From Chlorokybus atmophyticus (lineage: Eukaryota > Plantae > Mesostigma and Chlorokybus algae): 61,720 nucleotides of DNA. The notes under the pieces were generated by a model. The model worked only from the letters and a program-made list of their open reading frames with translations. It had not been told where the DNA came from and did no database searches. The stretch lies in assembly GCA_009103225.1 (NCBI GenBank), contig RHPI01000772.1:163500-225219 (forward strand), read 5' to 3'. The translations under genes and the position numbers were made by a program. Positions 18,676 to 55,053 of the stretch are shown piece after piece; positions within the stretch are counted from its first letter, which is position 1; every line of letters starts with the position of its first letter.

Positions 18676-18726
<51 letters not shown>
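18551..18726. repeat. (GA)n microsatellite spanning an N gap
   Basis: Pure GA run on both sides of 18606-18675 N. Confidence 0.95.
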
Positions 18727-18730
<4 letters not shown>

Positions 18731-19514
18731 CAATGCCAACAATGACAGTCTGTGCGACTGTCAATGTGAAGTGGACAGTCGAGTCTGTCAAGTGGACAGC
18801 ATAAAGTGGACATCTCTACGGGTGTCAATGCCAGCACGTACCTGAATACCAGGCCGTCCCTCATGTAGGCTTTATAGTCACGCACTGTCCGCCGCGACTT
18901 GGTGTGGATGGCAATGTTCTCTTGTGTGCAGATGCGTCCGAACAAGGCGTCGTTCCCTACGTATAAAATTCTGCCTCGTCCAATCAATATGCCTTTATCT
19001 TTAATGTGCTGGGAGTGTGCCAAGGTGGGATACGCTTCCACAAGAGCCCATATCTCCTCTGCATGCCTGATTGTAGCCACCTCATACCAGGTGAACCCGT
19101 TGAATTCTGTTTTACAGATTGCAGACAGTGCATTGGCGACTTTGTGGTGGAGCAGCAGGCCTGACCTCCAATCATCACGCATGACGCCAAAGAGTCGCAT
19201 AAGCCATCCTGACAGATCGCTTCATGAAGCTAATCTCGTAGTTTTTGCTGTTGGATGGGGTGTTAACATACAGCTTCACAGAGCGCTTGAAGGCGTAGCA
19301 CCAGAACACATCATGGTGGCCATGTCGACGGAGGATGTCAAGCAGGTGGCAAGTTTCCGCAATGTGCTCCAGAATCTTCTTGTTGGTACCAAAGTAGATC
19401 TCACTGTTCACCTTCCAATACCTGAGCAGTGCATCAGCGAGCTCCAGACGGCCGGAATCGCAACCGAAGCGGCGCGAGATGTCAAAGAACAAGCGAAATA
19501 TCATGTGGAGGCAC

Positions 19515-50457: not shown

Positions 50458-53400
50458 CAAGATAATGGTGGAGATGCTGGACTTAGACAACTACAACACA
50501 TGGAGTGTACGCATGAAGATGGTGCTGATTACCAAGCAGCTCTGGGAGTATGTGGATCCTGACGGAGCGGAGGCACGGGCAGGTGAAGAGTCAGCTTATG
50601 CCAAGAATAGCTTGAAGGCTCTTGCACGCATTGGCCTGCATGTGAAGGAGCATCACCTTGGCTTGATTAATGAGTGCAAGACTGGTCGGTAGTGTTGGAA
50701 GAAGTTGCAGGACTTCTTCAATGCCAGAAACAATGCAAGGAGGCTGCAACTACGCAAGGACCTCAGTGCATTCAAAAAGGATCCCGGAGAGCCGCTCGTC
50801 AAGTACATTGCCCGAGCAAGAGATCTGCAACGAGACCTTGCAGGAGTTGGGCATGATGTCAAAGAAACGGAGATGGTATGGGCTATCCTGGCGGGCCTGC
50901 CAGAAGAGTACGAGATGGTGGTCACAGTGCTGGAGTCATCATCAACCGAGCTTCTCCTTGATGCTGTGACACCCTACCTGCTGCAAGTAGAGCAGCGGAA
51001 GGCCAATAAGGCGGACAGCGGTGGAGATGCAGTTGCTTTTGCAACAACACCCTTCAAGGGCTATCAACAACAGGGAGGCAGTTCTCGTCCTCAAAGAAAG
51101 AAGGGAACGTGCCACTATTGCAAGAAGGAGGGCCATTGGAAGAAGGAGTGTAGGAAACTGCAGCGTGATGAAGCGAAGAGAAAGGGAGGAGGACAGCAAA
51201 GCGAGAAGACTGTCGCATTTGCTGCAAGGACTGTCAATACGGGCTGTCAACAAACAGCCTGTCAACAAGTTGAAGACTCTGGTAGACGGAGCAAAGGGGA
51301 GCAATTGAAGGTTCCAGCACCACTAGTTGTTGAAAGACAACCCAAGGCTCTGAGCTATATAGGGGCTGTTCAATCGTCTTCGTCATGGGTCCTGGACTCA
51401 GGCTGCACGCGTCATCTCACCAACAACAAGAGCAAGATGGAGGACTATCAATCCCTCTCCTCCCCCATCATGGTGGAATTTGGCAACCAGGAGTTGCTGG
51501 AGGCTACTGGCAGAGGGACTGTCCATCTGCATTGCAAGGTTGGCAATGCAATGACACACATTCTTCTCAAGGATGTTCTGTACGTCCCCAGGCTTGGCAC
51601 TTGTCTGTTCTCTGTACGAGTTGCTGCCAAAAGTGGAGGAAAAGTTGTGTTCGAAGGTGATAAGGGTTACATTGTGAAGAATGACGTCACCTTGGTGGAG
51701 AGCACGCTCAAGGAAGACCTCTACCACATTAGGGAGGCTGCAACTGTCAATGAGAAGATTGACAGCCGCGCATTTGCTGCACGCGCCAAGGAAGAGACAG
51801 CTCAGCTATGGCATCGCCGTTTTTCACATTTAGGGTACGACAACCTTGCAAGGCTGGTGAAGAAGAACATGGTTCAAGGAATCAACATTAAAGCGGAGGA
51901 GTTCCATGCTCAGCAAGGTGTGTTGTGTGAAGCCTGTGTGCTTGGCAAGCAGCATCGACAGCCCTTCCCACAATCAGCACATGTATGCACGAGGGTGTTA
52001 GAGCTGGTGCATATGGATGTCTGCGGTCCTTTGCCTGTTGCTGCCAAGGGAGAGGGAAGCCTGTACTTCTGCACCTTCCTTGACGACTATAGCAAGCTGT
52101 CTGTCATTGTGCCTTGAAGCTGAAGTCCGAAGTTGCTGGGACTGTCAAGAAGGTCCTCACTATGCTGGAGACGCAATCAAGACACAAGACAGTTACTGTT
52201 CGCACCGACAGAGGAGGCGAGTATGTCAATAACGAACTCAAAGCATACTTCACAAGCAAAGGCCTGACCCATGAAACCACCGCACCATATACACCTCAAC
52301 AAAACGGAGCTGCAGAGAGGCTCAATCGCACACTTCTGGAGAAAGTGAGAGCCATGCTTACGGACGCTCAACTCAAAGATCACTGGTGGAAAGAAGCATT
52401 GCTGACTGCCAACTATGTCCGCAACCGATCACCAGTGCGCATGGAAACCAAGACACCGTGGGAGCTGTTCTATGGTCGACAGCCGGACGTGTCAATGCTG
52501 AGGGTTTGGGGCTCGCGAGCGTATGTACACGTGCCGAAACAGTTGAGGAACAAGCTGCAACCTGCCAGCAAAAAGGGAGTGTTTCTTGGCTACGAAGCCA
52601 ATAGCAAAGCCTATCGCGTGCTGGTGGAGGAAACTGGCAAGATTGTTATTAGTCGTGATGTTGTTTTTGCTGAGGGAGGCACTACACCTGCTGCTGGAAA
52701 CACTGTGATAAAATGCAAGGAAGACGCTCAAGCACAACCAGCTCAAGAAGGAGGCGCCTGTCAAGATTCTTCATTGACAGCCCCTACTGCCATTGACAGT
52801 CCCAACCGACAGTCCCTGCAGGCTGTCAACCTTCTGGACTGTCAACATGGAGCTGACCCCGACGCATCATCGGCAGACAGCAGCAAAACCAACACACCCA
52901 ACAATGACCAGCAGCAAGAGGAGCAAGGGGGCTACAACCTGAGAGGGAGACATCACCCACAAGGCTTCTACAAGGCTATGGTCGCAAGCGCCAACGTGGG
53001 AGGGACTGTCGAACCCACCACATATGAAGAGGCGCTCAAAGGCTCTGACGCAGAGATGTGGCAACAAGCAATGGATGAGGAGATGGCATCACNGGCCAAC
53101 CATATCTGCAGTCACACAACAGTAGGTATATGCAGCATCACAATAGCAAAGAGTACCTCATGTACTTAAAATGCCAGTCACGGCGTGTGGTCCACGACAC
53201 CTCGCTCGAAGCGCTGTTGGTTTCGCTGTGGTCACCCTGCACCATGTGCATGTACACAAGATGGTTGTATGTGATGCCAAGACCCGGGAACTATGAGGAC
53301 ACCCAGGTTCTCACAAACAAATCTGCTCTCACCGGAGTGTCGCGGTGCACACCTCGGCGCATGAGGCTTCGCCTGTCTTTGACAAGCGCTACTGTTATTC

Positions 53401-55053
53401 TGGTGTCATACGGGTCAATACCCTCAAACCACTGGCCCTTGACCTGCCAGCAAGGACATGTATCACCAAATCTCACTCTACCATCAACTTGCAAAAACCG
53501 CTGCAACACACCTACTTACTAGGTTGCAATCAAGGTAGGTTTGTTCTGCAAAGCGGGGCTTGTCTTTCCTCAGGATGGCACATNTGTCTGAGCAAGGAGC
53601 TTGAGGGACTGGGCTTCACCGCATCCGGAGCTGACCCAGGACTGTTCATCCACCCGAATAAGGAGGTCTGGCTTCTTGTGTATGTGGATGATATTCTCGT
53701 TGCTGCAAGGGAGATGAAGGAGGTGAGCAACGTCAAAGAGTCGCTCATGAAGACCTTCAACACTAGAAATCTGGGAGAGGCCAAGTATTTTCTTGGCATG
53801 GTAATTTCGAGGGACAGGGAGCGCAAGACTGTCAACATCAGCCAGGAGCAGATGGTGTTAAGGTTGGCAGACAAGTTTGGGCTACAGGAGGCCAAGTACA
53901 AGTCGGTTCCTATGGCTGTTGGAGCACGGATGAGCAGGGCTGTCAACGGAGAGGGACTGTCAGACAAGGCTACCTACCCATATGGAGAGCTGGTAGGGAG
54001 TTTGCTATACCTATCAGTTAGCACTAGGCCGGATATTGCATTTGCTGTTGGAGTTCTAGCACGGCACATGTCCGCACCAACCATGGAGCATTGGAAGACT
54101 GCCAAGGGCGTTCTTCGCTACGTTGCTGGCACACCTACTGTCGGCATCACGTATGGAGGAGGAGACACTGCATTGCATGGCTACTGCGATGCTGACTACG
54201 CTGGAGATTTGGACACAAGGAAGTCAACCACGGGCTATACTTTCTTGGTGAATGGTGGAGTTGTGAGCTGGAGTAGCAAGCTACAACCCACTGTGGCAGC
54301 ATCAACAGCCGAAGCGGAGTACATGGCTGCATTACAGACTGTCAAGGAAGGACTGTGGCTTCGCAAGCTGGTAGCAGACCTGGGCTACAAGGCATCCACA
54401 ATCATCATCAACTGTGACAATCAGGGAGCAATCAAGTTGCTGAAACATCCCATTGCATCTGTTCGCTCAAAGCACATTGATGTTATGCATCACTTTGTGC
54501 GTGAGCGTGTAGCACGGAGGGAGGTGGAATTTGTCTACTGCAACACCGAGGCAATGTTGGCGGACTGCATGACCAAGACGCTTCCCCCATCCAAGTTCAA
54601 GGGTTGTTGCACAGGGCTTGGCATCAAGTGAAGGTCCAAGCATGAAGACTGTCCAAGCTGCCTGCGTGGGAGTGTTGGAGGACAGCCCCGACTGTCCTCA
54701 CCAGCTACAGTCAGCTTGGACAGCCCCTTGAGAGTCGCCTACATTGACAGTCCCTGACTGTCAGTAGGAGATATCTGCAAGACTGAAGGTGTGGCATCGA
54801 TATCAATGCAGCAGATCTCTGGCGGCGCTAGAAGGTCCTAGATAGGAGAGTCCTTTGTCTGCTAGCACAGGCTGTCATAGCTAGTATAACCAATAGGAAC
54901 TCTTGTGTACATCTGGTTAGATAGTGGCTAGGACTATATATTGAGTGTGCCGGGCCAGAGTTAATGATCCACATTGCATACCTTACGTGTGCAAGCTGCT
55001 GCTGTGCATGCTCGTGTGTGTGAGATAGGCTTAGTGTTGTAGCACGTTCAACA
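50458..55053 (+). mobile_element. Copia element (gag-PR-IN...RT-RH-PPT-3' LTR) with a mis-joined segment at 53093-53584
   Basis: LDLDNYNTWSVRMK, CHYCKKEGHWKKEC, WVLDSGC, LWHRRFSHLG, CEACVLGK, LVHMDVCGP, RTDRGGEY, PQQNGAAER, YVDDIL, GYCDADYAGD. PPT 54664-54672; LTR 54673-55053 (TGTTGG...TTCAACA). Stop at ~50688 and a 1-nt deletion at ~52113. Confidence 0.9.
53094..53583 (-). pseudogene. Probable CACTA transposase fragment between single-N joins
   Basis: WFEGIDPYDT...VRADLFVRTWVSS*FPGLG resembles the Transposase_21 region G(V)xTYD...LRAxL...D(F)PA. It is unrelated to the flanking Copia sequence. Confidence 0.4.

Follow-up and report, generated by a model that had tools for sequence, protein, structure and literature searches.

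Dense GACAGYC arrays in two unrelated transposable elements of Chlorokybus atmophyticus, a predicted CACTA-superfamily transposon and a Copia-type retrotransposon

The 7-mer GACAGYC (GRCTGTC on the opposite strand) is strongly enriched in two transposable elements of the early-diverging streptophyte alga Chlorokybus atmophyticus, i.e. a DNA transposon that we assign to the CACTA superfamily and a retrotransposon with long terminal repeats (LTRs) of the predicted Ty1/Copia type, here called Copia-A. Both lie in the window analysed, a stretch of 61,720 nucleotides (nt) from contig RHPI01000772.1 (positions 163,500 to 225,219), in which an exact search of both strands returned 109 sites, while 100 dinucleotide-preserving shuffles of the window gave 20.3 +/- 4.8 sites with a maximum of 32. 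The enrichment is real, strong and located at the DNA level, and within the window the motif is specific to these two families and no general mark of transposons. The arrays are best read, in our analysis, as candidate sites of a regulator of the kind of TnpA or VANC, with two twists, i.e. the sharing across superfamilies and the placement in coding sequence.

About one-third of the raw matches belong to near-identical Copia pieces that are joined by single Ns. Regardless, the excess exceeds what base composition would yield, as a previous sequence-only reading of this DNA had assumed, since it persists after removal of the duplicates, against codon shuffles and against local order-2 Markov expectations, on which all regional expectations given here are based. 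The DNA transposon (17600-26400) contains 45 sites (3.9 expected), the coding DNA of Copia-A 18 (1.7 expected) and the 269 nt past its stop codon another seven (0.63 expected), while all other DNA, 42.6 kb in total, contains 11 sites for an expectation of 11.8. Per kb, the two elements thus carry about 5-6 sites, around ten times the chance density, versus about 0.26 elsewhere. Sites are clustered in 42 of 70 cases inside the elements and in none of 12 outside, where no site lies less than 30 nt from another.

The seven clusters that had been counted by hand proved exact, i.e. 18725-18780 (four sites), 20983-21104 (seven), 22329-22405 (four) and 24998-25080 (three) in the CACTA element and 51208-51248 (three), 52776-52843 (five) and 54647-54762 (six) in Copia-A; a further cluster of seven sites at 20061-20326 had been overlooked. 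An unbiased scan of 7- to 9-mers, restricted to positions 1-56440 and thereby excluding the duplicated end of the window, ranked GACAGTC, CGACTGTC and GACTGTCAA directly below simple repeats, with CGGACCA/ATGGTCCG as the second over-represented family. Alignment of the sites extended the consensus to T-[T/G/C]-GACAG-[T/C]-C, which we summarize as T-[T/G]-GACAG-Y-C. GACAGTC, which is palindromic about its central base so that one central change flips the strand, occurs 45 times in the window and GACAGCC 37 times, compared with 17 occurrences of GACAGCT and five of GACAGGT. A T stands directly 5' of GACAG in 59 of the 109 sites (54 %), and when the neutral core ACAG is taken as the start, the 3' C is the most informative flank, above the T of TGAC. 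The strands are used 24:21 in the CACTA element and 9:16 in Copia-A, and this absence of strand bias favours double-stranded DNA over RNA as the target.

The first carrier and its motif-bearing parts are as follows.

17609..26386, minus strand: CACTA-superfamily DNA transposon, right end and transposase gene, recognized by transposase homology and a terminal repeat at 26372-26385
19181..23298, minus strand: conserved transposase core in the exon blocks 23298-23032, 22978-22592, 22257-21533 and 19504-19181, located by tblastn with relatives
25800..26386, no strand: terminal inverted repeat (starting CACACGGATTGACG) and subterminal array of GGACCATGNATGGTCC dyads, with a single GACAGYC
24998..25410, no strand: GACAGYC sites at 24998, 25017, 25074, 25381 and 25404 around a palindrome, inward of the dyads
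24153..24401, minus strand: four repeats of about 69 nt in an open frame that precedes the conserved core of the transposase
22258..22591, minus strand: transposase intron with six GACAGYC sites in 334 nt (22329, 22342, 22386, 22399, 22469 and 22557)
19515..21542, plus strand: X1, a non-autonomous member of this CACTA family nested in a transposase exon, with the same terminal repeats and with GGACCA dyads at both ends
18725..18780, no strand: cluster of four sites by an (AG)n run and the gap at 18606-18675, between two open frames
18606-18675: gap within the (AG)n run that the program had left unflagged, adjoining the 18725-18780 cluster

Judging from homology, the transposase is a DDE-type enzyme of the Transposase_21 (Tnp2) family and the element a divergent member of the CACTA superfamily. 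A word-based protein search with a transposase exon found nothing, and the relatives, 100 in number, surfaced through an exhaustive phmmer search with the 203-residue exon. They are collinear with the four minus-strand exon blocks in tblastn, and Transposase_21 was found with E < 0.001 in seven of the ten long relatives scanned, two of which reach the gathering score. The direct Pfam match of the transposase to Transposase_21 is weak (E = 0.04), and in a protein atlas it leads to the clusters of Plavaka and Transposase_21. Pfam returned nothing significant for the remaining frames of the transposon, including the C-terminal 314 residues, the atlas gave only weak leads, and no Transposase_24 (TnpA-like) gene was found in the element. 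The terminal repeat, CACACGGATTGACG, occurs at 19515, 21542 and 26386 and starts with CAC, not with the canonical CACTA; no further copy that could mark the autonomous left end is present within the window. A Gypsy element adjoins at about 17448. A related CACTA-like right end was observed at 1980-2362, which carries GGACC/GGTCC arrays without GACAGYC and ends in GGTCCGTGGAA... and GCCGTGTG, resembling the end of X1.

Two layers of repeated motifs can be distinguished in this family. In a correction to the previous sequence-only reading, the terminal arrays do not consist of GACAGYC; the termini carry GGACCATGNATGGTCC (GGACCA) dyads, and GACAGYC lies further in. The dyads are found at 19540-19790, 21240-21520 and 25800-26340, take up about 250-550 nt of every end present and probably represent transposase-binding subterminal repeats. 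The GACAGYC arrays lie directly inside these terminal dyads, both in the autonomous right end and in X1, and the dyad core CGGACC/GGTCCG is absent from Copia-A. The array at 24998-25410 precedes the likely first ATG of the transposase (about 24852, minus strand) by 150-560 nt. Three of the four repeats at 24153-24401 contain an exact head-to-head pair of GACAGTC and GGCTGTC, the fourth being degenerate; the same repeats encode reiterated peptides of the Q-P-T-V-N-V-A-G type. The intron at 22258-22591 is delimited by the exon blocks 22978-22592 and 22257-21533, and the conserved transposase exons (about 1.7 kb) hold just three sites. The cluster at 18725-18780 is probably intronic as well, a status that we infer rather than read directly because the gap at 18606-18675 adjoins it. 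Over the whole element, 15 of 18 neighbouring motif pairs are inverted and three are direct.

X1 alone holds 14 sites (0.7 expected), equally divided between two inner arrays at 20061-20326 and 20983-21104, and positions 20978-21084 form a near-perfect palindrome of 107 nt (94 %). The copy is bordered by CAC on both sides and the transposase frame becomes continuous upon its removal, while the boundary of a candidate 3-bp target-site duplication is ambiguous, given that the terminal repeat itself starts with CAC. The interior cannot be aligned to the autonomous copy, yet it holds the 14 sites, so that what has been conserved is the motif and not the spacers. We also considered a separate small element owning the arrays at 20040-21140 and rejected it, as its ends would match over just 7 nt and lack a target duplication. 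A tRNA-like stretch lies on the minus strand of X1 at 19830-20010 (with a T-arm-like GGTTCAAATCC), for which ARAGORN called no tRNA.

The second carrier, Copia-A, shows the motif in the following places.

50458..54672, plus strand: internal region of Copia-A, encoding gag, zinc knuckle, protease (PR), integrase (IN), reverse transcriptase (RT) and RNase H, with 18 coding motif sites
51208..51248, plus strand: cluster of three sites in the gag-PR linker, extending into an in-frame insertion specific to Copia-A
52776..52843, plus strand: cluster of five sites in the hypervariable IN-RT spacer with extra residues, three of them 13 nt apart and all in frame
54647..54876, plus strand: one site in the 3' untranslated region, followed by six within the U3 (unique 3') part of the 3' LTR, all in its initial 200 nt

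The order of Pfam domains (Retrotran_gag_2, zf-CCHC, Pol_BBD, gag_pre-integrs, rve, SH3_retrovirus and RVT_2) identifies the element at 50.5-54.9 kb as a Ty1/Copia LTR retrotransposon. The start of the 3' LTR is placed at about 54673, where homology to a second Copia element of the window (Copia-B) ends and TG follows a purine run. The 18 sites of the open reading frame (ORF) are spread over the three frames and the two strands. Synonymous-codon shuffles of this ORF gave 2.8 +/- 1.4 sites with a maximum of nine in 1000, i.e. about six times fewer than observed, and codon-order shuffles gave 1.1. Considering the use of all frames and both strands together with this excess over the codon shuffles, the signal resides at the DNA level.

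Where the coding sites lie was judged by alignment to eight distant Copia proteins. Eight of the 18 are found in the two linkers and ten elsewhere, several of these within Pfam domains. A pair formed by a near-site and a site (51742/51761) lies in an insertion of 5-7 residues in Copia-A, and single sites coincide with the conserved residues G-T-V, K-Q-H-R-Q-P-F and A-T-V-K, accommodated by codon choice or conservative change. The proposal that the arrays occupy the least constrained regions of their elements is therefore borne out in part, i.e. by the transposase intron, the array upstream of the likely start codon and the in-frame insertions of Copia-A, with ten of the 18 coding sites of Copia-A outside the two linkers. 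Neighbouring pairs in Copia-A are direct in seven cases and inverted in four, and many sites are single. In a protein search for close relatives of Copia-A, the best match was 40 % identical and none came from this genome.

The two carriers are unrelated, as had been assumed, one encoding gag, PR, IN and RT of the Ty1/Copia type and the other a CACTA-superfamily transposase. Capture of one fragment by both elements, which would have spoken against convergence of the arrays, is rejected, as the longest word common to the CACTA element and Copia-A is 15 nt long and centred on the motif, like all top word matches between them. The base 3' of the motif is G in 28 of the 45 CACTA sites, which creates a CpG, and C in 12 of the 18 coding sites of Copia-A; these differences in flank preference and in array layout fit independent origins. 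From this sequence comparison, the arrays appear to have arisen independently in the two elements.

In the rest of the window, no enrichment was seen in Copia-B (2.2-4.4 kb), in the Gypsy element (5.2-17.4 kb) or in a small LTR element. The host gene at 28700-36400 contains no site where 2.7 are expected (P = 0.065); the earlier statement that the motif is not clustered there holds, while its apparent depletion is at chance level. No clustered sites were found at any host gene of the window. At 40953-41112, loose GCTGTCGA-like words were noted, i.e. four exact GRCTGTC about 76 nt apart plus variants in DNA without a recognized gene, possibly part of a further element that bears the motif. A pair of LTRs at 11454-11706 and 13673-13925, 97 % identical, surrounds a minus-strand Copia-type gag; the two LTRs start with TGACAGTC and TGACTGTC, respectively, and so differ by a flip of the base at the centre of the palindromic motif.

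The state of the assembly bears on the counts for Copia-A through three features.

50025-50457: gap that hides the 5' LTR, the primer-binding site and the start of gag of Copia-A
53094-53583: foreign piece of 490 nt between two single Ns, replacing the N-terminus of the Copia-A RT
56441-61720, plus strand: incomplete copies of Copia-A with single Ns between them, sharing 98.6-99.4 % identity with 50651-53861

Because the DNA to the left of the first gap does not resemble the 3' LTR, continuity across it is unproven and the sites of the 5' LTR cannot be counted. At the position of the foreign piece, copy 3 of Copia-A has RT-coding DNA, and read contigs end at 53119 and 53580, with a depth of about 51 there versus 4-10 elsewhere (around five times); the piece probably stems from a higher-copy repeat and was mis-joined during scaffolding. 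The 30-odd motif matches in 56441-61720 repeat those of copy 1 and are therefore not independent. Another gap, at 39597-39814, is irrelevant to the motif result, the nearest motif being more than 490 nt away. The public sequence found to hold Copia-A consists of two DNA-like sets of read contigs. Comparing the window (50460-56440) with the read contigs of these two runs, C>T and G>A make up about half of all changes, a pattern that would fit the deamination of methylated cytosines in the copies of Copia-A.

What could maintain such arrays? Taken together, the lack of strand bias, the density, the retention of the motif in X1 while the spacers were lost, and the placement at likely promoters and in unconstrained DNA point to site arrays of one protein that binds duplex DNA. 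Dense arrays do lie at likely promoters, i.e. upstream of the probable transposase ATG and in the U3 part of the LTR. GACAGYC would then be the putative binding site of a single sequence-specific regulator that binds double-stranded DNA, and selection on the DNA itself would maintain its high density in the two transposon families. In Copia-A, an element with almost no non-coding DNA, the motif would have been forced into the coding sequence. Most likely, the arrays would act on expression or chromatin state, by activation or anti-silencing; a role in the cut-and-paste reaction is improbable, because the CACTA ends use the GGACCA dyads, which Copia-A lacks. It is tempting to speculate that the factor stems from the CACTA family, as the transposase or an accessory product, and that Copia-A is a free-rider copying the tag. 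This combination of a CACTA-supplied regulator, arrays selected at the DNA level and a free-riding Copia-A is the reading we favour, tentatively and as something short of probable. In a wider version, a regulator encoded by the CACTA element or by the host would coat GACAGYC-dense DNA and keep it active or unmethylated, the motif being a ‘self tag’ on which unrelated elements such as Copia-A have converged; in this version, Copia-A would have recoded its own polyprotein gene and added in-frame insertions in order to carry the tag. We consider this possible but doubtful.

Several observations weigh against our favoured reading. By analogy with Spm, it would be the GGACCA dyads rather than GACAGYC that correspond to TnpA-type sites, and neither an accessory gene nor a DNA-binding domain was recognized in this CACTA copy. 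Copy 2 of Copia-A has extra sites at 57154 and 57531, which differ by one base each from copies 1 and 3 (GGCTGTT/GGCTGTC and AACTGTC/GACTGTC); for these three copies without an outgroup, P is about 0.005 if the sites were gained and about 0.2-0.3 if they were lost, so that the differences neither show gain nor exclude neutral loss. Furthermore, the evidence comes from one window with one copy per family, and a host factor would explain the sharing across superfamilies at least as simply.

Such a host transcription factor, for which each family would independently have gathered enhancer arrays, much as LTRs gather heat-shock- or defence-type boxes, is a possibility that we regard with some doubt, though as nearly as likely as our favoured reading. 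The six sites in the first 200 nt of the U3 part and the arrays upstream of the likely transposase start are what it would lead one to expect, while the sites of a promoter factor would not usually saturate an element body with its coding DNA and introns, and the host genes of the window lack clustered sites. Among several candidates is a pair of TALE (KNOX/BELL) homeodomain proteins, in whose favour 54 % of the sites show the TGACAG core; against it, GACAGTC and GACAGCC (45 and 37) are far more frequent than GACAGCT and GACAGGT (17 and 5), and outward from the neutral core ACAG more information lies in the 3' C than in the T of TGAC. A neutral by-product, in which tandem or inverted duplication and slippage spread a seed word through unconstrained DNA, seems unlikely. 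It would account for the recurrent 13-nt spacings, for the 69-nt and palindromic units that resemble local duplications, and for the clusters in insertions and introns, but leaves unexplained why the same word is found in two unrelated elements, how ten isolated coding sites arose from codon choice and why X1 kept the motif without alignable spacers.

The predominance of inverted pairs in the CACTA element (15 of 18 neighbouring pairs) and the 94 % palindrome at 20978-21084 could also suggest a structural signal, i.e. hairpins or cruciforms that assist DNA-element transposition, recombination or replication. Since pairs in Copia-A are mostly direct (seven of 11), with many of its sites single, and a cut-and-paste hairpin would be useless to a retroelement, we hold this to be improbable. 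Even less probable is a signal read on the transcript for packaging, export or splicing. Sites do lie in transcribed regions and Copia-A shows a mild excess of one orientation (16:9), but each element makes frequent use of either orientation (24:21 in the CACTA element) and sites are present in U3, upstream of the usual start of LTR transcription. Lastly, an artefact of assembly duplication, composition, codon usage or a single captured fragment has next to no likelihood: the duplicated Copia pieces do supply about one-third of the raw matches, but the enrichment persists without them, under local order-2 expectations and under codon shuffles, and the longest common word measures 15 nt. The captured fragment, the composition or codon artefact, and the assembly duplication as an explanation of the whole were each tested and rejected.

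TnpA of Spm elements binds clustered 10-bp motifs, leading to local demethylation and activation, and TnpA of Arabidopsis Spm1 recognizes the motif CCVTCGCAAA, for which high-density clusters are required (bioRxiv 10.64898/2026.08.24.746577). The arrays described here resemble these clusters in being formed by a family-specific motif of about 9-10 bp that is dense, is found in both orientations and belongs to a CACTA-superfamily element; the targets of TnpA are likewise set by density and not by single sites, and a non-Spm cluster can be bound too. Unlike the Spm sites, which are located at the termini, GACAGYC is internal and spread over introns and element body, with GGACCA dyads at the termini; in addition, it is shared with a retrotransposon, and no TnpA-like gene (Transposase_24) was found in the element. 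The 9-bp motifs of VANC fill the introns and non-coding DNA of VANDAL elements; VANC6 motifs are also present in AT9TSD1, an unrelated element that reacts to VANC6 (PMC5735166). GACAGYC similarly builds up in introns and non-coding parts and is rare elsewhere, the nine-base VANC motif spreading by short repeats, and AT9TSD1 offers a precedent for an unrelated element that bears the motif of another family. In contrast to the VANC motif, which keeps to one orientation and avoids coding DNA, GACAGYC occurs in both orientations and saturates the Copia-A ORF via codon choice. Moreover, VANDAL elements belong to Mutator while the carrier here is a CACTA element, and no VANC homologue was seen.

Arrays of factor sites are also known from the U3 part of LTRs, such as the heat-shock elements of ONSEN and the boxes of Tnt1 and Tto1. 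The six sites in the first 200 nt of the Copia-A LTR are comparable to these, but three-quarters of the Copia-A sites lie in coding DNA and not in the LTR. For the plant KNOX/BELL proteins, which like MEIS belong to the TALE class, the site is TGACAG(G/C)T (PMC3022553, PMC13470011). The resemblance noted in the sequence-only reading thus applies to the shared GACAG core and not to the flanks, which are TC or CC in 82 sites versus CT or GT in 22, with the T missing in 46 %; in other words, Y-C takes the place of (G/C)-T, and the informative core lies one base further 3'. Palindromic TALE dimer sites exist, and the head-to-head pairs of GACAGYC recall them. TALE proteins are accordingly one candidate and not the default, and the link is weak. 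A further analogy is given by the DNA uptake sequences of bacteria, ‘self’ words of 9-12 nt that lie in coding DNA in several frames and form inverted pairs in non-coding DNA; these concern another domain of life and another process, and no relationship is implied.

To our knowledge, sequence-specific anti-silencing or self-activation of transposons, as exerted by TnpA and VANC, has so far been known from flowering plants and from DNA transposons. A directly testable motif is now defined in an early-diverging streptophyte alga and occurs in elements of both transposon classes, II and I, and both GACAGYC and the separate GGACCA dyad are useful annotation markers for these families in the Chlorokybus genome. 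Should a binder exist, such recognition systems would be old, a single factor could be the point of convergence or free-riding for unrelated elements, and the protein sequence of a retroelement could be shaped by selection for a tag in its DNA. If, in addition, the motif does act as a ‘self tag’, this alga would possess an anti-silencing or activation network that spans transposon classes.

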